Positions 1,417 to 27,835 of a DNA stretch of 37,921 nt are shown here, piece after piece (positions within the stretch are counted from its first letter, which is position 1; the number at the start of each line of letters is the position of its first letter). The position numbers and the translations under genes are program-made. Origin of the DNA: Macrostomum lignano (Eukaryota). The stretch covers positions 1 to 37,921 of the forward strand of contig NIVC01000115.1 in the NCBI GenBank assembly GCA_002269645.1. Reading direction: 5' to 3'. The notes beneath the pieces are model-generated. The model was not told the origin of the DNA and ran no database searches. It saw only the letters and a list, made by a program, of their open reading frames with translations.

Positions 1417-1732
1417 CTAATCTGCAGATCAACTGAATTTTATGCACTTTTGAGTTGGCTATTGTGCTACTTGACAGGAAAAAAACAGACGACGCAATCT
1501 ACGCCACGCCCGCGTTGCTCATCTTAACTGTGGGTGGGGACAATTCGCGTCACAAAGTCCTAGTTTAGTCTGGTGAGGAGAGAGCAGCTGAAAGTTATGA
1601 GTAGGGTTGGATTAAAGCTGCCACCTGTTGAAATGTATTATGACGATGACATGCAAATATCATTGAAAAGCTACCCTGTAACCATTTCAGGTTTTGCTCT
1701 GCACCCCATTGACTAAAACAGCGCTAACGGAC

Positions 1733-2062
1733 ATGGCTCTTCGCCGCTGTCACCGCCTCTGCAATGTGATCGGCATAGCCAAATACGTTTTTCTTACCTG
1801 TGTATCACTAATCACCTGCGGAGTCATAGTTGGCGGTATCCTAGCTTATTTAATCATTCTGCCGTACTACCGAGAGGCGCGATTCGAGCAGACCAGCTGC
1901 GTGTACCTTGGCGAAGAGATGAAGCGTATTATTGACTGCGAAAGCAAGTGCGCCAAGGATAGAAGCAGCTATCCCTGCTACATGGTCAGGGTCAACATCT
2001 CGGGCGTGCCTGAGCAAGGTGTACTGTTTGAAAATTTTCTCACTTATCTGGAGCAAGATAAG
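1733..2062 (+). CDS. KCNMB: BK channel beta subunit-like protein A, coding exon 1 (TM1 and first half of extracellular loop)
   Basis: MALRRCHRLCNVIG, hydrophobic TM1, then TSC, CESKC and YPCYMVRVN. Donor AAG|GTAACT at 2062/2063, phase 0. Confidence 0.85.
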
Positions 2063-2530
2063 GTAACTTTGTTGAAGAAACTGCACTGTTCAGTTTCTGT
2101 TCCTGAAATTGTGAAACATCTAATCTTTGAAAAAATGATATATTCATCAGAGTTGCCTAACGTGTAGGATCCTCTTTTGTTTCTGTATGAACCTTATTCA
2201 AAATTAAACAAATCTCCGACGAAAAATAAAATACAGGTTAGGTCAGAGAAAAACCTTAAAATCTCTGACCCCCTGTGTAGTGCGTACACTCACGAATGTA
2301 CATCTATTTAACACCAAAGCAAAGCCAATTAACCACCCCCCGGAAATCACTGACGCAGTGACGCTCCATTCTGGGCCAGACCTGAAAACAATTCTTACCC
2401 CCCTGCTGCGCCTCCGCCCCCCTCAATTGAAGAAATGTTTAATGTACATCTAAATATAGGTGGAGAGATACCCACTATTTCTCGGACCGCATGTGTACAC
2501 TCACGAATGTACATCTAGTCAACGCCATAG

Positions 2531-3270: not shown

Positions 3271-3588
3271 TCGATGCATAGCATCTTGATCAGACTGATC
3301 GACACTCAATCAATGAACAAGAACAGAAAAAACAGAAGCACTAGCTATGCATGATGCTGTTGTCATTTTCTCTATTTTCTCGAAAAATTATTTCATACAT
3401 TTTACATTTTACAGCAAGAAAATTATCGGCTTAAAAGCGCACAAAAATTTGGTTTTCAATAACGAAACGCACCGTCATACTTACATTGATTTAAAGACTT
3501 CTTCTAAGATATTAAACCAATTTGCTTAAATTCTGATAGAATAGCTAAAACATGATCTCTGTTCCTGACAGTAGTATTATGAGCATTT

Positions 3589-5330
3589 GACGATCAGACC
3601 GACGCTCGATGCCACCTCGACCAGCCTGTCGATCTGGCGCTGGGCGCCTTCAACGGACGAGGACAGGAGGGCGAGGTCGTCGGCGTAGCCAAGCACGCTC
3701 AGGCGCTTTTCGCCGTGTCGGCGACCGATGCGTCTGCGCAGCAGGAAGCCGTCATTAGCCGAGGGGAGTGCGGTCCGAAGCACCCAGTCCAGCAGCAGCA
3801 CGAAGAGGAACGGCGCTAGCGTGTCGCCCTGCAGAACTCCTGATGAAGTATCGAACAGGTCAGACAGGCCGTCCGCCGTCACCACAGCAGCTCGAGTATT
3901 GCAATACAGCGCCATGACTGCGTCGATTAGCTGCTGGGGTACCCGGTAGGCTCGAAGGACAAAGGGAAGTGCGGCTCTCAACACCGAGTCAAACGCCTTT
4001 CGAAAGTCAACGAAGACAATGATCAGCGTAGACTGGCGGATGCGCGCCTCCTCGATGACCCGGCAGAGTGCGAGGATCTGTGTCACTGTACCGCGTGTTG
4101 CGGCCGGAATCCGTTCTGCTCGTACCGCAGGTACGGGTCCAGCACCGACTGCAGACGATCGAGCAGCAGCCGGTTGAAGAGCTTCGCGGTGCAGGACATC
4201 AGCGAGATCCCGCGGTGGTCTTCTTTCCGCGTTGTCCCTGCCTTCTTCGGGATCGGCACGATGTGCGCGACGGTCCACTCGGTTAGGCGCAGGAGCGCCA
4301 GCGAGCACGTGGTTCATGACGCCTGTGACCTGGGAGGGCACACAGCGGAGCCGCAGCGCTTCGACCGGGACTTCGTCGGGGCCGAGCGCCTTGCCGCCTG
4401 ATGTTTTCCGAGCGAACAGCACAACGTTCTCCTTGGTGACTGGTCTGGTGCAGAAGTCCTCCTCAGCTGGGAGCGGCGTGTCCAGTGGGAGCGCAAAGCT
4501 GGCGGGCAGCGGCGACGCGGGCGCGTTCACGATGCCGGCGAAGAAGTCGCGCAATTCATTCCTGCGCTCCTCCGGGGTGTCGCCGGCCAGGTTCAGCGCC
4601 ACGCGCTTTTTGCGCCCGTCAGAGTCCGGACGGCCGTCCATACTGCGCGGCTCTTCACGTCGGGGCCGGCTGCAGTGATGGACCTAATGGCGTCGTTGAC
4701 AGCGGCCTGCTGCCGCTCGTCAAGAAGGCGCTCAAATGCGTCTTCAGCGTCGCCTGTGGGCCTCCGGTTTCTGCGGAGTCGCTCGATGTTGAGCCGCGCC
4801 TGCCTGATGATGGGGTCGCTCTGCCAGACAGGCAGCGATTTCTGCGCTGGTCGCATCAGCGGGACCGTCTGCTCTGCAGCGGCTCTAACGGCGGTGCTGA
4901 TGTCGGAATACTCCACCTCGCGCTGGTATCCAAGCGCGCCGACGAAGGCACCCGCGAATTGACGCTTCACGCGGGTGTCCAACAGTGCGCGATAGTAGCG
5001 CCGTGGCCGCTGCTTTGGCGGTCGGTAGAGCTGGTCGCGGAGCCGCAAGTCGCAGATCAGGAGTCGGTGGTCTGACCGGAGAGCCAGCGGAGCCATGGTG
5101 TCGCAGTTGGTGACGCGGCGGCGCTCGCGAGTGCGAACCAGCGCATGATCGAGTTGCGCCAGTCTCCTCGTGGCATTCCGCCCGCGTGCGTTCCGCCGCC
5201 TTCTCTTGCAGCCCGCAAAGGTGACCAGGCGGGCAGGGGGCTTGCGGAACTGGGTGTTCGCGGACACCAGATCCAGCCGGTCAAGCAGGTCCTCCAGCGC
5301 ATCGGTATTGGCGTCCTCAAGCGCAACATG
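3589..5330 (-). pseudogene. Inverted retroelement segment: APE endonuclease C-terminus and RT core, with several frameshifts
   Basis: Endonuclease motifs NTQFRK, QLDHALVR and SDHRLL; RT motifs FVDFRKAFDSV, GVLQGDTLAPFLF and GYADD. The frame changes near 4610, 4280 and 4095. Confidence 0.85.
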
Positions 5331-5332
5331 CA

Positions 5333-5984
5333 CAGGTGCTGACTGTGCCGGCCGACATCCCAGCGGACCTGACGTGCCGCGGCGCAGACTGGCAGACGAC
5401 CAAGCTCGCACGCTGCCAGCGGTTCACCTACCTCGGCGGTCTGGTGCCCCACGTGGAGGAAGACCTCCGGCGGCGCAGGGGATTCGCCTGGGCGGCCTTT
5501 CGTTCGATCCGAGCCGTCCTCCAGTCTGAAGCGCTGCCCGACCGCCAGAGGGCTCGGCTGTGGCAGGCGGTGGTCGAAACCGTCCTGCTCTACAACGCCG
5601 AGACGTGGACGCTGACGGCTACGCTAGAGCGCTAGACGCTAGACGTTACGCTAGAGCGGCAGCTGGACTCGGCGCACTCAGGACTGCTCCGTGCGGCCTT
5701 TCGAGCTGACGAGAGCGTCGGGACCGAGGCCCTGTACGATCGGGCCAAGCTGCAGCGCCCGTCCACCATCCTGCGCCGGTGGCGACTTCAACTGGCGGGC
5801 CACGTGATCCGGGCCGAGGGCTACTGCCCCCAACCTGTTCAGGACGTCCTGCTGCTCACCTTGCAGGGTCCGTTCAGGCGGGGTCTGGCCCGAACCCGTC
5901 GATACGTGGACTGCCTGCTGTGCGACGCTGGGGCGCCCCGACACTGACTTCGTTCGCTCCCAGGCTCTGCGGCGCGCCATCTGA
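5333..5984 (+). pseudogene. Non-inverted 3' retroelement segment: RT thumb and C-terminal region, interrupted by a 27-nt insertion containing a stop
   Basis: VLTVPAD..FTYLGG, RRRRGFAWAAF, VLLYNAETWTLT and RLQLAGHVIR. Confidence 0.8.
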
Positions 5985-7493: not shown

Positions 7494-7949
7494 CTGATTG
7501 GGGCGGAGTTGAGGGGTAGGAAAATTCAAATGACCTGAATGTACATTTAGGGTAGAGGGAGGCCAGAAGTGTACAGTAAGGGTTTGAAATAGCTCATATG
7601 TACAGCGAAAGGCAGAGATCGAGAGACCGATGATGCGCAGTGAAGTTTGGAAAGGGAATGTATGTACATTTGGAAAGAATGATGATGTACAGTGAAGGGC
7701 AGAAGGGAATGTACATAGATTAAGGGCAGGGAGACGCACCGTGATGTGCTTCATTGAAGAGGGTGTTTCTGTTCATTCGGAGGAAGGTTTTTAGAAAGAT
7801 AGTGACCTGAGTATGTACAACAGTTGCTCTTTTACCTTGGGTTGCGATAGGGGCCTCGCGGCCTATTCGCGGCGCCTGCGCCCCCCGTCAGTAGTAAGTA
7901 AGTAAGTATGTACAACAGTTTGGCTGAAATTATTCGTTTGTACACACAC

Positions 7950-8294
7950 CTCGTACACGTCGGAAAACGTCAAGTAGTTCTCAAACAGAGTTCCAGCTGT
8001 TGACAGACCAGACACGTTGACCCGAACAACGTAGCATGGGAATCTGCACTTCTCCTTCTTGCACAAGTAGCCATAGCTTTCCCGTTGGTTGCGCATGCAA
8101 TAGTGCAAATCTTCGCCAAGATATTCGCAGCTGGTCGGTTGAAATTGCGACTCGCGATAGTACGGCAATATGATGAGATAGGCAAGGATGCTGGACACTA
8201 TTAAACCGCAGGCGATCAACGATACGCAGGTGAGGAATACAATCTTTGCCAAGCCGATGACGTTGCAAAGTTTGTGGCATCTGCGTAAAGCCAT
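7950..8294 (-). CDS. KCNMB: BK channel beta subunit-like protein B, coding exon 1
   Basis: MALRRCHKLCNVIG, TM1, FPCYVVRVNVS. Donor GAG|GTGTGT, phase 0, at the same intron position as paralogue A. Confidence 0.85.
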
Positions 8295-8514: not shown

Positions 8515-9530
8515 GGGCGAGGCGATTCTTGGGGGGTTGATTTGGGGTGATTCTTGAGGGGTTGATTTGGGGCGATTCTTGAGGGGTGGATTTGGGGCGA
8601 TTCTTGAGGGGTGGATTTGGGGTGATTCTTGAGGGGTTGATTTGGGGCGATTCTTGAGGGGTAGATTTGGGGTGATTCTTGAGGGGTTGATTTGGGGCGA
8701 TTCTTGAGGGGTGGATTTGGGGCGATTCTTGAGGGGTGGATTTGGGGTGATTCTTGAGGGGTTGATTTGGGGCGATTCTTGAGGGGTGGATTTGGGGCGA
8801 TTCTTGAGGGGTGGATTTGGGGCGATTCTTGAGGGGTGGATTTGGGGCGATTCTTGAGGAGTAGATTTGGGGCGATTCTTGAGGGGTGGATTTGGGGCGA
8901 TTCTTGAGGGGTAGATTTGGGGCGATTCTTGAGGGGTGGATTTGGGGCGATTCTTGAGGAGTAGATTTGGGGCGATTCTTGAGGGGTGGATTTGGGGCGA
9001 TTCTTGAGGAGTAGATTTGGGGCGATTCTTGAGGGGTGGATTTGGGGCGATTCTTGAAGGGTTGATTTGGGGCGATTCTTGAGGGGTGGATTTGGGGCGA
9101 TTCTTGAGGGGTTGATTTGGGGGGGGTGATTCTTGAGGGGTAGATTTGGGGGGGGGTGATTCTTGAGGGGTAGATTTGGGGGGGTGATTCTTGAGGGGTT
9201 GATTTGGGGGGGTGATTCTTGAGGGGTTGATTTGGGGGGGGGGTGATTCTTGAGGGGTTGATTTGGGGGGGTGATTCTTGAGGGTTGATTTGGGGCGATT
9301 CTTGAGGGGTAGATTTGGGATTGATTCTTGAGGGTTGATTTGGGGCGATTCTTGAGGGGTTGATTTGGGGCGATTCTTGAGAGGTTGATTTGGGGCGATT
9401 CTTGAGAGGTTGATTTGGGGTGATTCTTGAGGGGTTGATTTGGGGCGATTCTTGAGGGGTTGATTTGGGGCGATTCCTGATGGGTGATTTGGGGCAATTC
9501 GGGATGGGCAGATTTGGGGCGATTCTTAAA
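8515..9530. repeat. 25-bp G-rich minisatellite (TTCTTGAGGGGTGGATTTGGGGCGA), ~40 copies
   Basis: Directly visible; accounts for the spurious 349-aa ORF 8448-9497. Confidence 0.95.
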
Positions 9531-11830: not shown

Positions 11831-12130
11831 ATGTACACTCGATTTCTAAAAATAGCCACATGCTCCCTCCAGCCCAGTCAAAATCTCTACCCCGTCTAGA
11901 TGTACACCCGATTTCTAAAAATAGCTACATGCTCCCTCCAGCCCAGTCAAAAGCTCTACCCCGTCTAGATGTACACCCGATTTCTAAAAATAGCCACATG
12001 CTCCCTCCAGCCCAGTCAAAATCTCTACCCCGTCTAGATGTACACCCGATTTCTAAAAATAGCTACATGCTCCCTCCAGCCCAGTCAAAAGCTCTATCCC
12101 GTCTAGATGTACCCCGGTTCTAAAAATAGC
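11831..12130. repeat. 69-bp tandem repeat with alternating A/B variants, ~4 copies
   Basis: ATGTACACCCGATTTCTAAAAATAGC(C/T)ACATGCTCCCTCCAGCCCAGTCAAAA(T/G)CTCTACCCCGTCTAG. Confidence 0.9.
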
Positions 12131-12435
12131 CCACATGCTCTCCCAGCCATGACTCTACCCAGCCTTGATGTAGCTCGTATATCCAATGTAAAAACAACCC
12201 ACATGCTCCAGCTCAGCGAAAAATTCTATTGAATACTTTGCCTGGATGTACACCTGATTTTTTAAAAACAGTCTACTTGCTCCAGCGCACAGACAGTTAG
12301 ATACATTACCTCTTCCAGAAATGTACACCTCGTATAAAAATTGCATCAACACAGAAGCGAAATAAATATACATCATGGTCATCTAGCAAACCGATATCCT
12401 GGCACAAGATATACGAAACTAAAAAAGCAGCAAAA

Positions 12436-12712
12436 TCAGGACTCCTCTTGCAGGAAATTGCTCGGCACGAGACCCTCGGCACCATTTCGTTCTAACCGGC
12501 CCATTAGAAAGCCGTCGTCGTCCATTGGTCCCAGTGCGATGATCACGTCGCCAGCGACAAAGCTGAGCTCCATATCGGAGTCAACATTGGGGCTAAGCTC
12601 CTTGGGATCGTAGTCGTATAAAGCTACAAGTCGGCGAAGCGGCGTTGCACCATTTGCTGCTGACGAGGACGGTTGCTGCTGTTGCTGCTGATGGAGTTGC
12701 TGCTGCTGCTGC

Positions 12713-12747
<35 letters not shown>

Positions 12748-12909
12748 TTGTTGCGACAGAAGCAGATCCAGTTGGCTCGGATCGTCAATTTGTCCAACAG
12801 GAACTTCGTTCACCATATTATAGGGGATCAGACCCGTGCGACCGTTGCATTCGCCGTGGTAAAATCCGTCTTCATCTCGGTCGCCCCACACCTTCATCAG
12901 CTGACCTTC
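12436..12909 (-). CDS. RIMBP2: RIM-BP last exon: second half of SH3-2, polyQ, SH3-3, stop
   Basis: Acceptor CCGCAG|GAA. EGQLMKVWGDRDEDGFYHGEC; LVALYDYDP..GLVPSNF. Confidence 0.9.
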
Positions 12910-13213: not shown

Positions 13214-13902
13214 CTTAAACGGCAACTCCTCTTGAATGGCATCCGGGTTCGGGCTCATTGTGGCGGGATCATAGTCGAATAGGGCAACAAAAATCCTGGA
13301 TATCCCGGATGGAGCAGCTCGCTGTTGCTGCTGCGGTTGCTGCTGCTGTTGCATATGCGGCTGCTGCTGCGGCTGCTCAGGCTCCGGCATTTCAAATGAC
13401 GACTCCTGCTGCTGACTGGGATGCCGCCTTTGCCGGCCTGCTCGATCCCTGCTCCCAGCTTGATGATGATGGTGCTGCTGCTGCTGCTGCTGCTGAGGCG
13501 GCGCCGGCGGAGGCGGAGGCGGCGGCGAGTCAGACCGGTGGCCACTTTGTCGGCGACTTCGCGATCCTCCGCCTCCGCCGCCACCGCCGCCGCCGCCGCC
13601 TGCCGCCGCCGATGACTGCCTGGCCTGATGCCGGCCGTGATGGTACGGCTCGCCTCGCCTGCCACCGTAGTGCCGGTCCCGCTGCTGCTGGTAGCGGTCC
13701 CGGTCCCGATCCCGATCCCGGTCCCGATCCCGGTCCCGATCCCGGTCCCGATCCCGGTCCCGATCCCGATCCCAGCCGGAGCCGCGACCGCCGCGTCTGC
13801 CGCTGTCGTAGGGATGCGTGACGTCATCGCTGATGATCTCGTCCTCCTCGGGCATGTACTCCTCTTCGGCGTCGGAATAGGGCAGGTCCTCGTTGGTGAC
13901 GT
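13214..13902 (-). CDS. RIMBP2: RIM-BP exon: acidic, (RD)n, polyG/P/Q/H linker and first half of SH3-2
   Basis: Acceptor CTCCAG|AC (phase 1); donor AAG|GTTGGT (phase 0). RIFVALFDYDPATMSPNPDAIQEELPFK. Confidence 0.88.
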
Positions 13903-14007
13903 CTGGAGGGTTGGCAGTCAGTTCTATGCTTGAGCGATTTCCGATGCATATCGTTGCAATAAGCTTAGTGAAATAAGACAACTGGCACTCTGATCCTGGC
14001 TTCTGTC

Positions 14008-15150
14008 ATATGACTCCATGTCCCTGTCATATGACTCCATGTCCCTGTCATATGACTCCATGTCCCTGTCATATGACTCCATGTCCCTGTCATTTGACTC
14101 CATGTCCCTGTCATTTGACTCCATGTCCCTGTCATTTGACTCCATGTCCCTGTCATATGACTCCATGTCCCTGTCATATGACTCCATGTCCCTGTCATTT
14201 GACTCCATGTCCCTGTCATTTGACTCCATGTCCTGTCATATGACTTCATATGATCTCCTTAATCCCTGTCACTCTCATCTCACTAATCCCTTACACTCTG
14301 ATCTCCTTAATCCTTGTCACTTTCATCTCACTAATCCCTGTCACTCTCATCTCACTAATCCCTGTCACACTCATCTCACTAATCCCTGTCACACTGATCT
14401 CACTAATCCCTGTCACTCTGATCTCACTAATTCCTGTCACTCTGATCTCCTTAATCCCTGTCACTCTGTTCTCACTAATCCCTGTCACTCTGATCTCACT
14501 AATCCCTGTCACTCTGATCTCCCTAATCCCTGTCACTCTGATCTCACTAATCGCTGTCACACTGATCTCCCTAATCCCTGTCACACTGATCTCCCTAATC
14601 CCTGTCACTCTGATCTCACTAATCCCTGTCACACTGATCTCCCTAATCCCTGTCACTCTGACTCCCTAATCCCTGTCACTCTGATCTCCCTAATCCCTAT
14701 CACTCTGATCTCCCTAATCCCTGCCACTCTGATCTCACTAATCCCTGTCACTCTGATCTCCCTAATCCCTGTCACACTGATCTCCCTAATCCCTGTCACT
14801 CTGATCTCCCTAATCCCTGTCACTCTGATCTCCCTAATCCCTGTCACTCTGACTCCCTAATCCCTGTCACTCTGATCTCCCTAATCCCTGTCACTCTGAC
14901 TCCCTAATCCCTGTCACTCTGACTCCCTAATCCCTGTCACTCTGATCTCCTTAATCCCTGTCACTCTGATCTCACTAATCCCTGTCACTCTGATCTCCCT
15001 AATCCCTGTCACTCTGATCTCCCTAATCCCTGTCACTCTGATCTCACTAATCCCTGTCACTCTGATCTCACTAATCCCTGTCACTCTGATCTCCCTAATC
15101 CCTGTCACTCTGACTCCCTAATCCCTGTCAGTCTGACTCCCTAATCCCTG
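14008..15150. repeat. Compound minisatellite: 21-bp (TGACTCCATGTCCCTGTCATA) array followed by 24-bp (TAATCCCTGTCACTCTGATCTCAC) array
   Basis: 21-mers at ~14008-14237, 24-mers at ~14250-15150; shared core TCCCTGTCA. Confidence 0.95.
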
Positions 15151-15237
15151 TCACTCTGTACCTCTGTCCCTGTACCCGCCCTGTCACTCTGTCCCTGTAC
15201 CCGCCCGAAAGACAAGAGAAAGAAAGCAAGAACTCAC

Positions 15238-15503: not shown

Positions 15504-15509
15504 TTTATT
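15504..15509 (-). terminator. Intronic polyadenylation signal AATAAA for the alternative terminal exon
   Basis: About 53 nt after the stop at 15562, followed on the minus strand by a GT-rich stretch (GTGTGGCGTTGGTTGG). Confidence 0.6.
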
Positions 15510-15561: not shown

Positions 15562-17859
15562 TCAGCTGGAGCCTTCGCCTCCTCCGGCGAGGTTCTTCGG
15601 GTCCAGCTTCTTGAACATGCTCGCCGTGCCCTCGCCGAACGCTTCAAATCTCTTCTTGGTGTCCCCACCGAAGGCGTCGAACTTTTTCTTAGTATCCTCG
15701 TTGAACGCTGCGAATTTCTTTTTATTTTCCTCGTTGAAGGCTTCGAAATTTTTTCGATTCTCCTCGTTCGCTTCGCGGATCTTTTCGCCCGTCTCATCGG
15801 CGATTTCCTCCACTTTTTCTTGGAATTCGTGGAAGCCTTTCTTTAGCCGGCCTAAGAAGCTCGAGTCCTCGGGATCGTTGGGATCGCCTTCGGCACCTTC
15901 AACACCTTCGGCACCTTCAGCACCTTCGGCACCTTCAGCGCCTTCAGCAGCCGCAGCTTCAGCAGCCGCAGCTTCAGCAGCCGCAGCTTCAGCAGCCGCA
16001 GCTTCAGCAGCCGCAGCTTCAGCAGCCGCAGCTTCAGCAGCCGCAGCTTCAGCAGCCGCAGCTTCAGCAGCCGCAGCTTCAGCGGCCGCAGCTTCAGCAG
16101 CCACAGCTTCAGCAGCCGCAGCTTCAGCGGCCGCAGCTTCAGCAGCCACGGCAGCCTCCTCTTCAGGCGTTGGCAGGGGTTCACCCCTAGGGCCCCGCTG
16201 CCTACCCTCGGCCGCTTCGTCGACTGTCCGACCAAACTCGTCCAACAGTTCCCCGCCGGGTCCTCGGACAACCTGTCCGGTGGATTTGTCTTCGAGCACG
16301 CCGAACTCGTTGACCCGCCAGCCGCACTCGGAGGCCAGCAGATGACCGCTCGCCGGGTCGCGAGGCGCGCCGCACACCGGGCGACACCGAGCGTCGAAGT
16401 AGCGACCCTGGGCGTCTCTCAACGGCGCCCCGGTTGAGGCGTCGACCAGCAGGCCGAATTCGTTCTCGCGTCTTTCTGCCGAGTCAATAACGGCTTGACT
16501 GTCGGCGTCAACAAGCTGCTGCTCGTCGGCCAGACAGACTTTCCGGCAAGCCAGCGGCCGACCTCCGGCGTCGAGCAGCTCACCGTTTGGCCCAAGCACG
16601 GGCTGCCCGGTGTCCGAGCTGGTCAGCACTCCGAGCTCGTTCGGCTCGGCCGGCGACACCAGACTGCCGTCCGGGCGGCGGACTCCGTGCACCGGACGAC
16701 AATCGGAGTCGAAAAACTCGCCGGACGGACCTCGGACTGGCCGGCCGGACTCGTCCAGCAGGACGCCATTGTCGTTGACGCCGCCAGTTGGCAGCGGCGT
16801 GCCAGTCGACGTGTTCAACAGTCGGCCAGTGGACGCATCAAGCCGGGCCCGGCGACAATCGATTGGCCGGCCGGACGGGTCGAGCAGCTGGCCGTCCGGC
16901 CCCGGCTCGCTCAGCACGCCGTAGTAGTTCGGCTGCTGGGCCTCGTCGTCGACCAGCTGGCCGTTCGGCAGCCGCCGGCCGTAAACGACGGCGCCGTCGG
17001 GAGGGCCATAAAATTCTCCGTTTAGTCCGCGAAGCGGCAGCCCGCGCGAGTCGGCCAGCACGTTGAACTCGTTGGCCACGGCGTCGGCCACTTCGTCCGG
17101 CGAGTCAACACGACGACAGGCGATTTCGGCTGCCGTTGCGTCCAATAGTTCGCGTCCGGTCGGCCCGGACAGTGGCCGGTTGTCTGTCCCGGACACTAAC
17201 ACGCCGAAGTAGTTGAGCTTTGGAGGCGGGTCGTCTGGCTTGCACGCCAGCAGACGGCCATCGTCGGGATGTCGGAGGCCGCCGAGAGCGGGCCGGCCGT
17301 CGGCACCAAAGAACTCGCCGCGGCTGCCTCGCAGCGGCACGGAGCCGACAGTCAGGATGCCGTGTGAGTTCGCCGCGGCCTCGGGAAACGCGTCCAACGG
17401 AGCAGCACCGTCCGGGACTGGCCGGCAGGCGATCGGCCGACCGTCCGAGTCGATTAGAGTGCCGTCTGGTCGGGTGAGAGCCAGGCCGGTGTCCAGATTA
17501 GCCAGGACGCCGAACCAGTTGACGGCGGGCGGCGGGTCGCCCAGCAGCTCGCCGTCGGGGCCGCGCGGCCCGTAGACCGGCTGGCCGTTGGAGGAGAAAA
17601 ACTCGCCAGACTGGCCTCGGATCGGGACGCCGTTTTCGTCGATTAGCACGCCGTTAGCGTTGACGCTTGTAGCGTCGCCGAAGGTCGTAGAATTATTAAA
17701 TCCGTTAGACTCCGGTACAAGACGGCCGTCCGGGGTTCGAGTCGCGATTCGACAAAGTATGGGAGCGCCGTCTGGCGGAGATCGGAATTCGCCGCTCGGA
17801 GTTCGCAGCGGCTGACCGGTTGAGGGATCAACCAGGATGCCGAATTCGTTGGTTTGGGC
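15562..17859 (-). CDS. Putative alternative terminal exon of RIM-BP (765 aa): 11 NxxG[VI]L repeats, (EAAAA)n spacer, 11-mer amphipathic tail
   Basis: Open 2298-nt GC-rich frame whose only Met lies near the C-terminus, with an in-frame TAA just upstream. Acceptor CCTTGTGTCAG|GCC is phase 0, matching the donor at 18831; own polyA signal. Confidence 0.75.
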   Translation of the reverse strand, partial: AQTNEFGILVDPSTGQPLRTPSGEFRSPPDGAPILCRIATRTPDGRLVPESNGFNNSTTFGDATSVNANGVLIDENGVPIRGQSGEFFSSNGQPVYGPRGPDGELLGDPPPAVNWFGVLANLDTGLALTRPDGTLIDSDGRPIACRPVPDGAAPLDAFPEAAANSHGILTVGSVPLRGSRGEFFGADGRPALGGLRHPDDGRLLACKPDDPPPKLNYFGVLVSGTDNRPLSGPTGRELLDATAAEIACRRVDSPDEVADAVANEFNVLADSRGLPLRGLNGEFYGPPDGAVVYGRRLPNGQLVDDEAQQPNYYGVLSEPGPDGQLLDPSGRPIDCRRARLDASTGRLLNTSTGTPLPTGGVNDNGVLLDESGRPVRGPSGEFFDSDCRPVHGVRRPDGSLVSPAEPNELGVLTSSDTGQPVLGPNGELLDAGGRPLACRKVCLADEQQLVDADSQAVIDSAERRENEFGLLVDASTGAPLRDAQGRYFDARCRPVCGAPRDPASGHLLASECGWRVNEFGVLEDKSTGQVVRGPGGELLDEFGRTVDEAAEGRQRGPRGEPLPTPEEEAAVAAEAAAAEAAAAEAVAAEAAAAEAAAAEAAAAEAAAAEAAAAEAAAAEAAAAEAAAAEAAAAEAAAAEGAEGAEGAEGAEGVEGAEGDPNDPEDSSFLGRLKKGFHEFQEKVEEIADETGEKIREANEENRKNFEAFNEENKKKFAAFNEDTKKKFDAFGGDTKKRFEAFGEGTASMFKKLDPKNLAGGGEGSS

Positions 17860-17994
17860 CTGACACAAGGGGCGCGCATGCGGTAGTGGTGGTGGTGGTG
17901 GAAGGGTGCTGGTTTAATAGTGCAAGCTGTGCTTTGATTGACAGGCACGGAATAACGATGCTTCGCATATTTTTATGTGCAAAGGAGGATAAAA

Positions 17995-18530
17995 AGTTTA
18001 CAGGGCAGGGATATAGGACAGGGAAACTATGGGTAGGAGTTGGGGTGGGTGTTTTATACACCCAGAGGAGGCTATAGTGTACATTAGGGCAGGAAAACTA
18101 AGGGTAGGAGTTGGGGTGGGTGTTTTATTCACCCAGAGGAGGCTATAGTGTACATTAGGGCAGGAAAACTAAGGGTAGGAGTTGGGGTGGGTGTTTTATT
18201 CACCCAGAGGAGGCTATAGTGTACATTAGGGCAGGCAAACTAAGGGTAGGAGTTTGGGTGGGTGTTTTATTCACCCAGAGGAGGCTATAGTGTACATTAG
18301 GGCAGGCAAACTAAAGGTAGGAGTTGGGGTGGGTGTTTTATACACCCAGAGGAGGCTACAGTGTATATTAGGGCAGGAACAGCGAAGCTAGGAGTTGGGG
18401 TGGGTGTTTAATACACTCAGAGGGAGGCTACAGAGTAAATTGGGGCAGGAAAATTGAGGGTAGAAGTTGGGGTGGGTGTTTTTTACACCCAGAGGAGGCT
18501 ACAGTGTACATTAGGGCAGGAAAACTGAGG
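17995..18530. repeat. 71-bp intronic tandem repeat, ~7-8 copies
   Basis: GTGTACATTAGGGCAGGAAAACTAAGGGTAGGAGTTGGGGTGGGTGTTTTATTCACCCAGAGGAGGCTATA units. Confidence 0.92.
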
Positions 18531-18830
18531 GTAGGAGTTGGCTGGGTGTCTTATAGAACCTGAGGAAGTTTTACCTACATGTAATAAGTAACGATATTGG
18601 CTAAACTCTAAAGAGTTAGCAGGTTAGTATATATACATAAAATGTTACTTATAGAAAACGTTTAAATAGCACAATCTACAACAAAATAAACGAGAGTAAG
18701 TTGATATCTTTTGTAAAGTTAAGACACAATCTATACAACATCAAAAGGCTACCACAGACACGTGAGAAAGGAAAAATCACTACGGATTCTAAGAAAGCTA
18801 AAATTGCTGCCAAATTGGTCTAGGCGTTAC

Positions 18831-19424
18831 CCTCGGATTGCGCGAAGCGGACAACAGGTGCTGCCTGCGCAATCGATGGAATTTCGATGGACTAACGCTG
18901 CGACTTCGAATCATTCGGTGGTCCATCAGGGCTGAGGTGTTCGAGGCGGCGGCGGCGGCGGCAGCTCCTCGCCTACTGGAGCGATGATGCTGGGAATGAG
19001 GCTGGCGCAGGCTGCCATGCTGAGGCCAGTCATCCTGCTGCTGCACCAGCTGCTGATGATGAGGCGGCAGCTGCCAGTCATCAAAGGAGGCCTGCATCTG
19101 CAGCTGCCTGTAACCGCCGCCGCCGCCAACAGGGTTGGCATTGTCGTACATGGAGGCGGGACCTGCAACGCCGTCGTTGGGATGACGAAGCAGGCCGCCC
19201 TGCTGCTGCTGCTGATGGTGATAAGCTTGATTATAACCGGCATGAACACCTGTTGGCGACCCGGTTAGATGAGGCGGCATACCAGCGGTTCTACTGAACC
19301 TGGACGACGGGCCAAGATTCAAAGGCCTACCAGACGTGGAAAGTCTTTGTTGTTGCTGCTGCTGTTGTTGTTGCAGGAGCAGAAGTTGCTGCTGTTGCTG
19401 CTTTCCGAAAGCCAGATGACGCTG
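18831..19424 (-). CDS. RIMBP2: RIM-BP exon: Q/H/S-rich disordered linker after FN3-3 (198 aa)
   Basis: NAGNAG acceptor ACAG|CAG, donor AGG|GTAACG; open 594-nt frame, phase 0 to 0. Confidence 0.75.
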
Positions 19425-20152: not shown

Positions 20153-20594
20153 ATCTTCTGGCCTAGGCAAATCGATAGACGAATTAGCGGCAGACAGAGT
20201 CAGCGAGCACGGCGGGTCCGAGTCTAAACTCTCCACAGTCTGACCATTGTGAGTACCGACTGTGCGCACGGTCAGGAAGGCGGTGTGAGGTGGCAGGGAG
20301 TTCTGGGCGAGCAGGCAGTGATCTGAGTACGCGTCCAAGCACTCCGTGACCCGGTGCCTGCCGTCAGCGTACACTGCGTAGCCGGTGACCCGAACACCGT
20401 TGGACACGCCGTCGGAGTTGGCAACGGTGACCGGTAGCCAGGTGACTAGCAGGGAATGGTCCTGAGGCCGGGTCGATTTGAACGTCCAGAGGAGCGTCGG
20501 GCAGGCCGCCGGGCGTGGTTCGAAACTCCAAGGTGGCGGTGAGGAGAGGCACGGAGGTGCCCGTAGTTTTCGGAGGCCTGGCCCGCACGCACAC
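20153..20594 (-). CDS. RIMBP2: RIM-BP exon: end of FN3-2 and FN3-3, with an apparent frameshift near 20465
   Basis: VCVRARP..PDAPLDVQIDP in one frame, then PQDHSLLVTWLPV..VTGYAVYADG..ESLDS in another. Length 442 nt between phase-0 splice sites. Confidence 0.85.
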
Positions 20595-21152: not shown

Positions 21153-21815
21153 GTCTCCAAGGGCTGACGGGGCTGTCAGTCTCCAAGGGCTAACGGGGCT
21201 GTCAGTCTCCAAGGGTTGTCAGTCTCCAAGGGCTGTCAGTCTCCAAGGGCTGTCAGAGTCTCCAAGGGCTGTCAGAGTCTCCAAGGGCTGTCAGAGTCTC
21301 CAAGGGCTGCCAGAGTCTCCAAGGGCTGTCAGAGTCTCCAAGGGCTGCCAGAGTCTCCAAGGGCTGCCAGAGTCTCCAAGGGCTGCAGAGTCTCCAAGGG
21401 CTGCCAGAGTCTCCAAGGGCTGTCAGTCTCCAAGGCTGTCAGTGTCTCCAAGGCTGCTGTCAGTGTCTCCAAGGGCTGCCAGAGTCTCCAAGGGCTGTCA
21501 GTCTCCCAAGGCTGACTGTCAGAGTCTCCCAAGGCTGACGGGCTGTCAGAGTCTCCCAAGGCTGACGGGCTGCCAGAGTCTCCCAAGGCTGACGGGCTGT
21601 CAGAGTCTCCCAAGGCTGACGGGCTGTCAGAGTCTCCCAAGGCTGACGGGCTGTCAGAGTCTCCCAAGGCTGACGGGCTGTCAGAGTCTCCCAAGGCTGA
21701 CGGGCTGTCAGAGTCTCCCAAGGCTGACGGGCTGTCAGAGTCTCCCAAGGCTGACGGGCTGTCAGAGTCTCCCAAGGCTGACGGGGCTGCCAGAGTCTCC
21801 AAGGGCTGTCAGTCA
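21153..21815. repeat. Intronic minisatellite (GTCTCCAAGGGCT core; 27-bp GTCAGAGTCTCCCAAGGCTGACGGGCT units in the distal half)
   Basis: Directly visible. Confidence 0.92.
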
Positions 21816-22559: not shown

Positions 22560-23260
22560 GAGATTGGGGAGATACAGGGAATTGGGTGGGTGTGTGCAGA
22601 AGGGCAAGGAATGGAGACGAAAATGAGGGGGAGACAGGGAATGGGGTGGGTGCGCGCATAGAGTGGCAAGAAATGGAGATGAAAATGAGGGGGTGGGGAG
22701 ACAGGGAATGGGGTGGGTGCGCGCATAGAGTGGCAAGGAATGGCGACGAAAATAATGGGGTGGGGGAGACAGGGAATGGGGTGGGTGCGCGCATAGAGTG
22801 GCAAGGAATGGCGACGAAAATAAGGGGGTGGGGAGACAGGGAATGGGGTGGGTGCGCGCATAGAGTGGCAAGGAATGGCGACGAAAAAAGGGGGTAACAG
22901 GGAATAGGGTTGGTGCACGCATAGAGTGGTAAAGAATGGAGACGAAAATAAGGGAGACAGGGAATGGGGCTGGTGCGCGCATAGTGGCAAGGAATGGCGA
23001 CGAAAATAATAGGGTGGGGGAGACAGGGAATGGTGTGGGTGCGCGCAAAGAGTGGCAAGGAATGGCGACGAAAATAATGGGGTGGGGGAGACAGGGAATG
23101 GGGTTGGTGCGCGCATAGAGTGGTAAAGAATGGAGACGAAAATAAGGGGGTCGGGGAGACAGGAAAGGGGGTGGGTGCGCGCATAGAGTGGCAAGAATTG
23201 GAAGCGAAATTGGGGTGGTAGGGAGACAGAGAGTGGGTGGATGCACGTATAGAGTGGTAA
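22560..23260. repeat. ~63-66-bp G-rich intronic minisatellite, ~11 copies
   Basis: GGGAGACAGGGAATGGGGTGGGTGCGCGCATAGAGTGGCAAGGAATGGCGACGAAAATAA units. Confidence 0.92.
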
Positions 23261-23555
23261 GGAATATAACAAGGACGACTTACGTAGAAGGAAGGGAAAC
23301 CTTGTTTCTTGGAAAATTTTAGAAGGCAGGTTTTCCCGAAAAAATACACTACGGAGATAGGAAGTTTGCATTTTTTCAGCACAAAAATTGTTATTGCTAT
23401 TGATAGGAGGCAGATCCAGTGTTCATCTTTTGATATGTTGTGCCTTTCTTAGTGCTCTATCGATACTCATAGAGCTTTTCGTTCAGAAAATTAGGATTCT
23501 ATGTTAATTTTTTATTCTACGTACATTTCCTGTACCTAAAAATCATAAAAATGCA

Positions 23556-23675: not shown

Positions 23676-24681
23676 TTTCAATGGCTTTTAGGCACAAGAC
23701 ACGTGCAAATTAAATTTTTTTACATTTTACATTTTTTACATTTTTACATGTGTAGTGGCGGGCAGTCCAGCTAGGCTGATGGAGGGTATAAACAAGAGAT
23801 AAAACAGAGGAAAGCACTAAAATCAATATTATTTACTCGTATAAAAGCGTTTATCTGATCGTGTTTAGTTTTGAGCAATTAAACTTGCAAAACAGTTAAA
23901 TTAAACCTAGAAATCAAACGTCTAGCATAGCATAAGATGACCTTATCAAGTGTTTAAAGCTGCAATAATATTCCGATTTTACTACTAATGCAGGCTAAGT
24001 AGCCACCTGAGGCATTCCGCTGCTACTTTCTATAAAAAAATTCATATTGACGACGAGAAAAAACTAGGGCCCCTTGGTTCTCCAGTAAGCTGAATAAACA
24101 AAAAATGATAAATATATTTGCATAACTGCTGTAGCAAAAATGCTGATTGGAAAAGCGTAATAAAAAACTAACAAGGTAATAAGTAGCTCATACTTGAAAT
24201 AAACTAAATTATTATTGTCTATAATGCTTACTAGAAAATCGCCTTCCACGGCTTCCGGTGTCTAAATATTCAACAAGAGAGACAAAATTATGACAGAGGA
24301 GAACAATTACCTGATGACAATAGCTAACCCAGTGCTCAATATGAACAGAGTAAAACAAATCAGTCATCCAGTGCTAGAATTAATTATTAATCCCCTAAAC
24401 TCCCCAATTCGGTATCGAATCTGTGCGTCACCATTGACAGGTTTTGCTTGTCAAATGAATTAGGAAAATTAAATTACAGCCCCCGTCCAGCTTATTCAAT
24501 CAAATATCAATAACTGCAACTGGATTGGGAAATCTAGAAATTGAAGATGAATAGAATAAATTAAATTATAAATACATGGCTTGATAGTGTATAAAGCTAG
24601 TAAATGAGTCCTAGCGATAAGAGCACAATGCGCTAGTATGGGTATTTATATACACAACTGTTATTGAATAATTCGACTCAC

Positions 24682-24757
24682 TAGGCAGTGGTTCGACGTA
24701 GTTGGAGGGCACATAGCCTCTCTTGCCGTCCATCATCTCGCCATAGTAATAGCCATC
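24682..24757 (-). CDS. RIMBP2: RIM-BP exon: second half of SH3-1
   Basis: GGCAG|GAT to A|GTGAGT. DGYYYGEMMDGKRGYVPSNYVEPLP. Confidence 0.9.
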
Positions 24758-24894
24758 CTGCCGTGTAAATAGAAAGAGATTATATTTATAAGCATGATTT
24801 TAGAGGTGTGCTAACATTCGTTCCATTTGGATTTGGGGAGCTTATGTAAGCGTTTGGTTGATTTTAGGATAAACATATGAGATCATTTAAGTCC

Positions 24895-25775
24895 TAATTA
24901 CCTCTGGGATCTGGGACTAATTGAGTCTTAATTACCTCTGGGATCTGGGACTATTTGAGTCTTAAGTACCTCTGGGATCTGGGACTTTTGAACTCTTAAT
25001 TACCTCTGGGATCTGGGACTATTTGAGTCTTAAGTACCTCTGGGATCTGGGACTATTTGAGTCTTAAGTACCTCTGGGATCTGGGACTATTTGAGTCTTA
25101 AGTACCTCTGGGATCTGGGACTATTTGAGTCTTAAGTACCTCTGGGATCTGGAACTTTTTGAATCTTAATTACCTCTGGGATCTGGGACTATTTAAGTCT
25201 TGAGTACCTCTGGGATCTGGGACGATTTGAGTCTTAAGTACCTCTGGGATCTGGAATTTGAATCTTAATTACCTCTGGGATCTGGGACTATTTGAGTCTT
25301 AAGTACCTCTGGGATATGGAACTTTTTGAATCTTAATTACCTCTGGGATCTGGGACTATTTGAGTCTTGAGTACCTCTGGGATCTGGGACGATTTGAGTC
25401 TTAAGTACCTCTGGGATCTGAGTCTTGACTCTTTGAGTCTTAAGTACCTCTGGGATCTGGGACTATTTGAGTCTTAATTACCTCTGGGATATGGGACTCT
25501 TTGGGACGTCTTAGTACCTCTGGGATCTGGACTATTTGAGTCTTAAATACCTCTGGGATCTAGAGACTATTTGAGTCTTAATTACCTCTGGGATCTGAGA
25601 CTATTTGAGTCTTAATACCTCTGGGATCTGAGACTATTTGAGTCTTAATTACCTCTGGGATCTGGGACTATTGAGTCTTAATTACCTCTGGGATCTGAGA
25701 CTCTGGGATTTAGAGTCTTAATTACCTCTGGGATCTGAGACTATTTGAGTCTTAATTACCTCTGGGATCTGATAT
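24895..25775. repeat. 34-bp intronic minisatellite (TTAAGTACCTCTGGGATCTGGGACTATTTGAGTC), ~25 copies
   Basis: Directly visible. Confidence 0.95.
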
Positions 25776-26455
25776 GATGAAATCTTAAATGCTTTTAAAA
25801 TCTTAAATAAGTCGTTTGCAGTTTGTCAACTTTGGGATCTGTTAAATAGGATTTTAAACAGCTGACGTCATCCAGCCCATCCCTTATCAATAAATTTTAA
25901 ATTTGTTGGAAGGTTGCAATATTTCAACAAAAAAGAGAAAAACTTTGCGTAAAAAATTCCGATAGCAAAGAGAACAAAACCAAAAGCAGTTTTAATGCGT
26001 TACAAAATTAGCTTCTTTTAGCTTGGCAACAAAATTTAACGACAACATCTAACGCCAAAATTCACTGCAAATTGCCCAGTTATAAATTTTTTCAAAACCT
26101 TGTTATACAAAGCAAACTAAGAATAGAAATCTTGTTTGGTTTTTTACGGAGCGCTAAATTTTTAAGGATAAAAACTAGAAACTTTTTTCTCGATACTACT
26201 GCCGAACGATGACGTCATAGTAGCTAGCAGTTACGCATATTTCGCTAATTTTTACAATGTCAACTAAACTCTACGTCTAGGTCAATTTATACTACTCACA
26301 CACTGTGTGTTTTCGGTAGTAGTTACGTGTGTTTTTTTTCAAGATTTCTTATCTACTAATGCAATAAAAATAACCAACACACACCTCGAAATAGTTGCTA
26401 AATACCAAAAGGTAGCAATAAAAACTACGAAAAGGTTAAATAGAGTCTTGTCAAC

Positions 26456-26590
26456 CTGATCGCAGTCCCCGTGCACAAGGACATAGTCGCCCACGGAGAG
26501 CGTCAGCTCATCCTCGGGTCGGTCGTTAGGAGAGCAAGAGTACGGATCGTAGCTGTACTTGGCCACGAATGCCCGTTTACCTGGATCCGA
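26456..26590 (-). CDS. RIMBP2: RIM-BP exon: first half of SH3-1
   Basis: ACTCAG|TCG to CAG|GTTGAC, 135 nt. SDPGKRAFVAKYSYDPYSCSPNDRPEDELTLSVGDYVLVHGDCDQ. The 5' boundary is less certain (weak pyrimidine tract). Confidence 0.85.
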
Positions 26591-26924
26591 CTGAGTTCGT
26601 TTTTTGGTCCGCAGAAATTGCGTTTTAGTTTTAGTTTAGTTTGATTGAAACAGTACAAGTGGTTTGTAATAATTATGATACCATTTTAAGGATAGTAAGT
26701 AGTCATCTGGTACATTGAAAATAATTTTATCAAAGCTAATAGTACAAGCTATATTAAATAAACGCTGCACAGAATTTACAGCAAGAAATATAATTATTTG
26801 GTTACAGAGACAATCAAGGTATAATAGATATAAGAAATAATAAAAATGCGCACATGCACTCTCACACGAAAAAAGTAGGAAAACACGAGAGAATAGATAC
26901 AAGAAGGAAGAAAGACTAGACACC

Positions 26925-27835
26925 TAGACACTGTGAGGGAGATAGAGAGGAGAGAGACTAGACACTGTGAGGGAGATAGAGAGGAGAGAGACTAGACACT
27001 GTGAGGGAGATAGAGAGGAGAGAGACTAGACACTGAGGGAGATAGAGAGGAGAGACTAGACACTGTGAGGGAGATAGAGAGGAGAGAGACTAGACACTGT
27101 GAGGGAGATAGAGGGGAGAGAGACTAGACACTTTGAGGGGGAGAGAGGAGAGACTAGACACTGTGAGGGAGGAGAGAGGAGAGACTAGACACTGTGAGGG
27201 AGAAGAGAGGAGAGACTAGACACTGTGAGGGGGGAGAAAGAAGAGACTAGACACTGTGAAAGAGATAGAGAGAAGAGATACTAGACACTGTGAGGGGAGA
27301 GGGAGAGAGACTAGACACTGTTGAGGGGAGAGAGGAGAGAGAGACTAGACACTGTGAGGGGGAGAGGAGAGAGACACTGTGAGGGGAGAGAGAGGAGAGA
27401 GAGATTAGACACTGTGAGGGGGGAGAGGAGAGAGACTAGACACTTTGAGGGGGGAGAGGAGAGAGAGACTAGACACTGTGAGGGGGAGAGGAGAGAGACA
27501 CTGTGAGGGGAGAGAGAGAGAGAGAGATTAGACACTGTGAGGGGGGAGAGGAGAGAGACTAGACACTGTGAGGAGGGGAGAGGAGAGAGACACTGTGAGG
27601 GGGAGAGGAGAGAGAGAGACACTGTGAGGGGGGAGAGGAGAGAGACAGACTGTGAGGGGGGAGAGGAGAGAGACTAGACACTGTGAGGGGAGAGAGGAGA
27701 GAGTTTAGACACTGTGAGGGGGGAGAGGAGAGAGACTAGACACTGTGAGGGGAGAGAGGAGAGAGACTAGACACTGTGAGGGGAGAGAGGAGAGAGACTA
27801 GACACTGTGAGGGGAGAGAGGAGAGAGACTAGATA
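26925..27835. repeat. ~30-bp purine-rich minisatellite (AGACTAGACACTGTGAGGGGGAGAGGAGAG)
   Basis: Directly visible. Confidence 0.93.

Follow-up and report, generated by a model that had tools for sequence, protein, structure and literature searches.

An exon encoding eleven tandem protein repeats in the RIM-binding protein gene of Macrostomum lignano

The DNA analyzed here (the window) is a stretch of 37,921 nucleotides from the flatworm Macrostomum lignano (contig NIVC01000115.1 of the assembly GCA_002269645.1). A gene for a RIM-binding protein (RIM-BP; RIMBP2/TSPOAP1-like) takes up nearly the entire minus strand of the window, and one exon of this gene, located between the third FN3 domain and SH3-II, contains the 11 tandem protein repeats described in this work. 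At the presynaptic active zone RIM-BP acts as a core organiser, and its three SH3 and three FN3 domains form a plan that is considered to be conserved from worms to mammals. The initial annotation of the window, generated by a model from the sequence, had recognised the repeats but missed the RIM-BP host gene, the helical tail that follows the repeats and the stop codon of the open reading frame (ORF) itself. The following parts of the gene were identified, given in transcript order with a slash at exon boundaries.

About 36.6-31.2 kb, minus strand: coiled-coil exons
26342-26635 and 24614-24799, minus strand: SH3-I, in canonical order
22.2-20.1 kb, minus strand: FN3 exons, in canonical order
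20201-20470, minus strand: third FN3/Ig domain (Pfam Ig_RIMBP2, 78.4 bits at a cut-off of 27, E 4.9e-22)
18831-19424, minus strand: Q-rich exon of 594 nt, phase 0 to 0, donor AGG/GTAACG in frame with the repeat exon
15562-17859, minus strand: whole open exon of 2,298 nt (a multiple of 3) with repeats, helical tail and stop codon (TGA at 15564-15562)
13214-13963, minus strand: downstream exon that begins at a strong phase-0 acceptor (cactaag/) and codes for an acidic stretch, a DR run, polyQ and half of SH3-II (the first)
12439-12909, minus strand: last canonical exon, with the second half of SH3-II, polyQ, SH3-III (Pfam SH3) and the stop codon

SH3-II and SH3-III, located in 13214-13300 and 12439-12909, were detected on the same strand as Ig_RIMBP2 (Pfam SH3_2 62.3 bits, SH3_9 59.9 bits; SH3 E 3e-17 and 2e-16), and SH3-I, three FN3 domains, SH3-II and SH3-III follow one another in the order that identifies a RIM-BP. 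A composite query of the FN3 and SH3 parts retrieved 272 RIM-BP homologues with E-values down to 5e-55. With a Macrostomum lignano protein the FN3 exons have 55-62% identity and long distinctive strings in common, whereas the identities to proteins of rotifers, insects and other taxa are distinctly lower. The host gene of the repeats is therefore a RIM-BP gene.

Canonical RIM-BPs (RIMBP2/TSPOAP1, Drosophila Rbp) have the same order of coiled coil, SH3-I, three FN3 domains, linker, SH3-II and SH3-III. Unlike these, the gene described here carries a repeat module of about 550 residues in the linker, which may end an isoform of its own. In eight other RIM-BPs the distance between FN3-3 and SH3-II, counted from motif to motif, is 149-264 residues and the corresponding stretch is short and of low complexity, whereas with the repeat exon the coordinates give a distance of about 1,000 residues here. 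The repeat motifs occur in none of 125 fetched proteins, and no other RIM-BP with the module could be found among these proteins or by the exhaustive HMMER search described below. Apart from the repeats, the protein contains several homopolymeric tracts. Exon 13214-13963 (minus strand) codes for polyG, polyP, polyQ and polyH tracts besides the acidic stretch and a (DR)n run of about 15 copies, and a polyQ tract of about 30 residues is located between SH3-II and SH3-III (12670-12760).

The repeats are encoded by a minus-strand ORF of 768 residues (15562-17868) and lie within its first 560 residues. The units are 41-63 residues long and begin at residues 7, 70, 117, 167, 219, 266, 314, 365, 410, 469 and 520 of the ORF, which corresponds to positions 17850 down to 16189 of the window.

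16189-17850, minus strand: array of 11 tandem units, about 48 residues per unit
17850-17662, minus strand: unit 1 (u1), hybrid
17661-17521, minus strand: u2, B-type
17520-17371, minus strand: u3, A-type
17370-17215, minus strand: u4, B-type
17214-17074, minus strand: u5, A-type
17073-16930, minus strand: u6, B-type
16929-16777, minus strand: u7, A-type
16776-16642, minus strand: u8, B-type
16641-16465, minus strand: u9, A-type
16464-16312, minus strand: u10, B-type
16311-16189, minus strand: u11, hybrid

All 11 unit starts that had been read from the sequence before (NEFGIL, NANGVL, NWFGVL, NSHGIL, NYFGVL, NEFNVL, NYYGVL, NDNGVL, NELGVL, NEFGLL and NEFGVL) were found again in unchanged order. 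Of the boundaries given for the domain at that time, 17859 coincides with the predicted first exon base directly after the cag acceptor; the other, 16215, lies within the tail of unit 11, and the ORF runs on to 15562. The motif N..[GN][VIL]L was counted 11 times, whereas 20,000 residue shuffles contained it 0.09 times on average and at most 3 times. The motif G-E-[LF]-[LF]-D-x-x-G-R-P-h was counted nine times, compared with 0.001 in shuffles. In a leave-one-out analysis each unit was scored with 27.7-59.6 bits by the profile of the other ten, whereas the top profile score among 2,200 shuffled units was at most 14.4 bits. The search of the six-frame translation of the window with the unit profile revealed exactly 11 copies and no others. 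The consensus unit is N-x-F-G-V-L-x-D-x-x-T-G-x-P-L-R-G-P-x-G-E-[LF]-[LF]-D-x-x-G-R-P-[IV]-x-[CG]-R-x-x-x-P-D-G-x-L-[LV]. Glycine (13%), proline (10%) and aspartate (9%) are frequent in the repeat domain and account, together with serine, for 39% of its residues.

The array is composed of five B-A super-repeats of about 96 residues, preceded by a hybrid first unit. B-type units are recognised by EFF or EFY followed by G-x-R-x-P-D-G and A-type units by ELL-D followed by A-C-R. Clustering by the unweighted pair group method with arithmetic mean (UPGMA) divided the units into {3,5,7,9} and {1,2,4,6,8,10,11}, and of the 462 possible 6/5 labellings only 3 equal the odd/even labelling in how well they separate the pairwise identities. 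Based on this split and the labelling test, the alternation of two subtypes that had been proposed for the whole array is strict over units 2-10 (B-A-B-A), while units 1 and 11 at its ends are hybrids. The alignment of the five super-repeats has a mean column identity of 51% with 19 invariant columns and a regular hydrophobic pattern, and the turn-forming motifs DxxG, GPxG and PDG sit exactly between conserved hydrophobic pairs. A staggered pseudo-alignment of four units was rejected, as in this case MAFFT merely stacks identical segments.

Each of the A-type units has one conserved Cys-Arg dipeptide (LCR, ACR, ACR, DCR, ACR), whereas the corresponding column of the B-type units is Gly. In a cytosolic scaffold this dipeptide is an unexplained feature, for which metal binding, lipidation or a redox function are possibilities.

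The repeat frame contains no stop in 548 codons, compared with 8-14 stops in each of the other five frames, and the whole ORF is free of stops over 768 codons. The G + C content (GC) at codon positions 1, 2 and 3 of the repeat region is 0.73, 0.53 and 0.74, and the value at the third position (GC3) is near that of the FN3 exon (0.77). Tandem Repeats Finder (TRF) reported no DNA repeat between 16148 and 18013, whereas elsewhere in the window it detected more than 25 satellites with identities of 82-97%. Between super-repeats the nucleotide identity at codon positions 1, 2 and 3 is 0.58, 0.61 and 0.45. The Nei-Gojobori method resulted in non-synonymous divergences (dN) of 0.45-0.73 and synonymous divergences (dS) of 0.82-1.67 for pairs of super-repeats, with dN below dS in ten out of ten pairs. 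Furthermore, 187 of 380 pairs of identical residues use different codons, and the conserved G, P, R and L columns contain mixed synonymous codons. As the codon-position identities, the low dN relative to dS and the differing codons are found where TRF has no signal, the comparison of the units indicates that they are products of old internal duplications which selection at the protein level has maintained since then. This agrees with the initial annotation, which had described a genuine repeat domain under protein-level constraint, its units diverged in DNA but with the motifs kept, in contrast to the satellites.

The following elements were located at the ends of the exon and in the part of the ORF behind the repeats; the two internal donors were predicted from sequence only.

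17860-17862, minus strand: inferred splice acceptor cag after a C/T-rich tract (first exon base 17859, phase 0)
16583-16584 (16584/16583), minus strand: second candidate internal donor ACG/GTGAGC, phase 1
16204-16205 (16206/16205), minus strand: candidate internal 5' splice site AGG/GTAGGC, phase 1
15942-16147, minus strand: (EAAAA)~14, a 15-bp array with 96% DNA identity (Tandem Repeats Finder)
15887-15949, minus strand: (EGA)n, after (EAAAA)~14
15595-15858, minus strand: eight 11-residue amphipathic repeats (FLGRLKKGFHE ... TASMFKKLDPK), hydrophobic moment 0.48-0.51 at 98-100 degrees
15504-15509, minus strand: AATAAA polyadenylation-type hexamer, 53 nt past the stop codon

The open frame starts at 17913, behind an in-frame stop at 17916-17914, and contains no ATG upstream of the exon. 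The sole Met of the 768 residues lies 17 residues from the end. Since a usable start codon is lacking, the repeat exon is not a stand-alone gene. The FN3-3 exon ends with GAT/GTAAGT at 20153 in phase 0, and the chain from this donor to cag/19424, through the Q-rich exon to AGG/GTAACG at 18831 and on to cag/17859 is in phase 0 throughout. As read from these canonical GT/AG sites, which share phase 0 with the two upstream exons, the repeat exon would be included in RIM-BP mRNA. The coding exon spans 17859 to at least 16206, and the frame is open on to 15562.

Because the ORF runs through the tail to a stop codon and an AATAAA signal, the repeat exon may be an alternative last exon, with a canonical isoform that skips the repeats; this arrangement is favoured here. 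The best downstream acceptor, cactaag/ at 13964/13963, is in phase 0 with a pyrimidine fraction of 0.68. Its phase matches the donor of the Q-rich exon, which fits skipping of the repeat exon, and the canonical isoform would join the donor at 18831 to the acceptor at 13963, both in phase 0. Neither AATAAA nor ATTAAA could be found within about 440 nt after the canonical stop codon behind SH3-III (12000-12438, minus strand). Both internal donors would lead to a cassette exon only via the weak acceptor at 13924/13923, which has a pyrimidine fraction of 0.45, lies 40 nt downstream of the phase-0 site and is the sole phase-1 acceptor.

Beyond the last repeat the ORF extends for 214 codons to the TGA. 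Its GC of 0.52, 0.33 and 0.70 at the three codon positions is of the coding type. The (EAAAA)~14 array is a recent expansion, given its DNA identity of 96%. Amphipathic 11-mer tails of apolipoproteins, synucleins and perilipins bind curved membranes and, by analogy, the 11-mer amphipathic tail found here may bind membranes as well. The tail motifs 'LKKGF' and 'MFKKL' resemble the canonical extreme C-terminus KKKKGFFSKGKKLFKKLG, which is present behind SH3-III in 12 of the 125 fetched proteins; the likeness is short and may be due to chance.

Pfam and NCBIfam scans of the ORF resulted in nothing above noise. RHS/YD repeats (PF05593, TIGR01643) had no match at E<=10 in either database, cell-wall/choline-binding repeats (PF01473, CW_binding_1) had no Pfam match, and transposase, reverse transcriptase, integrase or gag-type domains are absent from the ORF according to Pfam. 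The unit profile, in turn, revealed no further copy of the unit in the window. A word-indexed search of 5.8 billion proteins revealed nothing with the 548-residue domain or the 11-unit profile (8,000 and 3,839 candidates scored). The exhaustive HMMER search (phmmer) of 1.84 billion representative proteins resulted in five weak matches at E<=1e-3, the best with 1.6e-9. These are a protist ANTH/I_LWEQ protein, two bacterial TrbI/VirB10-like proteins of the DotG/IcmE type, one actinobacterial protein of GPNGELLGPDGQPLR 15-mers and one spurious match. The alignments cover only the central hairpin (profile positions ~11-45 of 49) with high bias scores, and the 48-residue unit and the A/B alternation are absent from all five. 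Among PDB sequences, the best phmmer match (E 0.004) is spurious (a VP1 chain) and the best match of the unit profile has an E-value of 0.11. A scan of JGI metagenomes with the protein led to 96 pattern matches, of which none was confirmed, and literature searches on RIM-BP isoforms and linkers and on DUF3659 yielded nothing relevant to the repeat domain. The loose resemblance to GPDG-type repeats of nematode proteins that had been suggested is not supported, since no nematode or other metazoan protein is among the matches of the exhaustive search.

What the module has in common with other proteins is one hairpin motif of about 15 residues, G-h-h-D-x-x-G-R-P-h, which recurs in unrelated bacterial and protist repeat proteins. 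The best phmmer match (E 1.6e-9) is the protist Sla2/HIP1-like protein P0001 with 'GRLID' decapeptides of DUF3659 (PF12396), which also have h-h-D-x-x-G-R-L-h turns. DUF3659 arrays are uniform with a period of 10 residues, and whereas P0001 matches the family with 94 bits, the ORF described here has no DUF3659 match at E<=10. The actinobacterial protein P0004, which consists of the GPNGELLGPDGQPLR 15-mers and belongs to no Pfam family, contains the same R-G-P-x-G-E-L-L-x-x-x-G-[RQ]-P-L hairpin and is 34-40% identical to the repeats over 105-187 alignment columns by pairwise BLASTP. However, it has a uniform period of 15 residues without the N-x-F-G-V-L strand, the PDG-x-LL strand or the A/B alternation, it stands in an unrelated bacterial context, and its profile match, which has a bias of 75 bits, is confined to positions ~6-42 of 49. 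In the DotG/IcmE-type (TrbI/VirB10-like) proteins P0002 and P0003 of type IVB secretion systems (T4BSS), the hairpins 'RGPDGKLYDEQGQLI' and 'NGNVLDSEGNQV' resemble 'RGPSGEFFDSDCRPV' and 'NDNGVLLDESGRPV' of the flatworm repeats. Their unit is about 82 residues long, only profile positions 14-30 align, with 8 bits per copy, and each of the two proteins has a TrbI domain, which is absent from the ORF according to Pfam. Choline-, cell-wall- and glucan-binding repeats (glucansucrase domain V) have a like design of tandem aromatic-x-D-x-x-G hairpins in an elongated arrangement, but are extracellular and bacterial, whereas the module described here is part of a cytosolic metazoan scaffold. Judged by these searches, the module is an orphan repeat that matches no described family and is made from a widespread hairpin motif. 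The earlier statement that no family can be assigned thus holds for Pfam, NCBIfam, PDB, Foldseek and the large protein searches; a strong match to a described family or to a transposon protein was looked for and neither was found.

AlphaFold2 modelled super-repeat u8-u9, given a five-row alignment, with a predicted local distance difference test score (pLDDT) of 73.9 and a predicted template modelling score (pTM) of 0.50. Block means of the pLDDT are 89-77 in residues 1-70 and 68 in residues 71-80, and the low-confidence tail ends in a helix. Paired strands of one or two residues recur in the model at intervals of 6-8 positions, and the turns fall on DxxG, GPxG and PDG. The prediction is a ribbon of about eight tight beta-hairpins per super-repeat in an extended meander. 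Foldseek found nothing at E<=0.001 in PDB with this model. The best match was the dextransucrase 5ngy_A (E 0.16, probability 0.11, TM 0.17), and the top rows were glucansucrases (E 0.16-3.4, TM 0.13-0.17), whose glucan-binding region consists of hairpin repeats. With such E and TM values there is no real match, so the likeness to glucansucrases is only an analogy. Of the beta-hairpin-rich solenoid proposed initially, the hairpins are weakly supported by AlphaFold2 (pLDDT 74), whereas the model does not show a solenoid but looks like an extended meander, for which Foldseek found no fold match. The check by AlphaFold and Foldseek suggested at that time thus led to a predicted hairpin ribbon, given the paralogue alignment, and to no significant fold match.

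The remaining features of the window are CaKB-like ORFs, a retrotransposon fragment and satellites.

1694-2167, plus strand, and 7863-8294, minus strand: two paralogous ORFs with Pfam CaKB (BK-channel beta subunit/TipE-like; E 1.6e-6 and 9e-4)
3577-5411, minus strand: GC-rich (65-68%) retrotransposon reverse transcriptase fragment, apparently truncated, between the CaKB-like ORFs (RVT_1, E 8.9e-15)
488-1000, 8521-9527, 14003-15158, 18014-18566, 21196-21808, 22565-23265, 24885-25771, 26924-27833 and 36792-37645: examples of satellites (Tandem Repeats Finder)

The CaKB-like ORFs are located just 3' of the RIM-BP gene. This is curious, as the recruitment of BK channels by FN3 domains of RIM-BP has been reported (PMC6092624), but it may be coincidence. 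The reverse transcriptase fragment (3577-4641) is about 11 kb away from the repeat exon and unrelated to it. The introns and flanks of the gene are full of tandem satellites, more than 25 in number, with periods of 19-163 bp and identities of 82-97%, and several of them generate long spurious ORFs.

The best explanation, which we hold with about even confidence, is a RIM-BP repeat exon under selection whose hairpin ribbon serves as a spacer or docking rod, used in an alternative-last-exon isoform. Each unit would form three tight hairpins, N-x-F-G-V-L-x-D-x-x-T-G-x-P-L, R-G-P-x-G-E-[LF]-[LF]-D-x-x-G-R-P-[IV] and [CG]-R-x-x-x-P-D-G-x-L-[LV], which together would give an elongated beta-meander ribbon and not a globule. 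Within the scaffold of the active zone, such a module would most likely be a semi-rigid spacer, a multivalent docking rod or both. The favoured isoform would comprise the coiled coil, SH3-I, three FN3 domains, the repeats, the (EAAAA)14 helix and the 11-mer amphipathic tail, without SH3-II and SH3-III. The SH3-II/III pair binds Ca2+ channels and RIM, and the isoform would lack this pair. An extension of this explanation is speculative and rather improbable. It holds that flatworm RIM-BP has a new alternative C-terminal module, in which the 11-unit hairpin rod, a rigid (EAAAA)14 helix and a synuclein-/perilipin-like membrane tail of 8 x 11-mers replace SH3-II/III; the isoform would tether vesicles or membranes at a fixed distance, and the D/N-rich turns might respond to Ca2+.

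Several points weigh against the selected repeat exon with a hairpin ribbon. All junctions are inferred from sequence, as is the use of the exon as a last or as a cassette exon, and a generic position weight matrix served to calculate the splice scores. Since two further frames are likewise open in the 3' part of the ORF, its openness by itself is no proof that the tail is coding. The selection estimate rests on paralogous units within one gene, as no orthologue of the exon was found, and dS between super-repeats is near saturation. For AlphaFold2, super-repeat u8-u9 was aligned with the four other super-repeats, a shallow set of five rows, all of them paralogues, and when the whole domain was modelled from its sequence alone the result was unusable (pLDDT 42, pTM 0.22). 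The composition and the position in a normally disordered linker would fit an unfolded region equally well. Finally, the function proposed for the module, that of a lineage-specific spacer or multivalent module, is purely conjectural.

A serious alternative, if a somewhat unlikely one, is that the RIM-BP exon is coding but represents the expansion of a disordered low-complexity linker, in which aromatic, Arg and Asp 'stickers' tune scaffold condensates without a defined fold. The low scores of the full-length AlphaFold2 model, the large share of G, P, D and S, the short low-complexity counterpart in other RIM-BPs and the Foldseek result without a fold match are consistent with this. Points against disorder are the 19 invariant columns, the 51% mean column identity and the regular hydrophobic pattern of the super-repeats, as well as the DxxG, GPxG and PDG turns placed exactly between conserved hydrophobic pairs; the core reaches a pLDDT of 77-89 given the paralogue alignment, and dN is below dS, though dS is saturated. 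An unlikely arrangement is that of a constitutive or cassette internal exon, in which the donor at 16206 or 16584 is joined to the acceptor at 13924/13923, so that the full-length protein would carry the rod between FN3 and SH3-II/III, with the EAAAA/11-mer tail as part of an intron. In its favour, the two candidate donors share phase 1, and the phase-1 AG at 13924 would restore the frame of SH3-II. However, this acceptor has a poor pyrimidine tract, with the strong phase-0 acceptor 40 nt upstream, and a Gly-rich frame with its many GGT codons should contain phase-1 GT by chance. The tail, moreover, keeps an open frame, a coding GC3 and a protein periodicity of 11 residues.

The evidence leaves very little room for a foreign or independent exon, that is, a nested gene, a transposon ORF or a bacterial repeat gene gained by horizontal transfer. 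Although the exon has a GC of 63-68% and the best similarities include bacterial proteins (P0004 with 34-40% identity; DotG/IcmE-like proteins), its GC3 equals that of the neighbouring RIM-BP exons, it has no start codon and canonical in-phase splice sites on both flanks, and it codes for no transposase, reverse transcriptase or integrase domain. The bacterial similarities are limited to profile positions ~11-45 of 49 with high bias, and the 48-residue unit occurs in no other protein among the 1.84 billion representatives or the 5.8 billion word-indexed proteins. Least credible of all is a chance open frame in GC-rich, formerly satellite intronic DNA without any gene feature. The introns are indeed filled with satellites and stops are few in GC-rich DNA, but the probability of 768 stop-free codons at this composition was estimated at about 6e-8, and only one of six frames is open. 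The pattern of divergence is also opposite to that of the satellites, which are 82-97% identical, while the repeats are below TRF detection with their amino acid motifs kept. GC3, splice phase, the missing start codon, the absence of a transposon domain and the divergence pattern thus led us to reject horizontal transfer, an origin from a transposon, a nested gene and a chance ORF.

If the linker is disordered, the repeats would be a species-specific linker expansion and as such an ordinary finding. If the selected repeat exon with its hairpin ribbon is the true explanation, a selectively maintained module of about 550 residues in the central linker would be a rare structural innovation of RIM-BP, especially if the isoform ends in an amphipathic helix and not in the channel-binding SH3 pair. 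The gene would then be a natural experiment on the spacing and valency of a scaffold. On a more modest level, the 48-residue unit in its 96-residue super-repeat is a well-defined orphan repeat, which could seed a new family model when flatworm genomes are searched with it.

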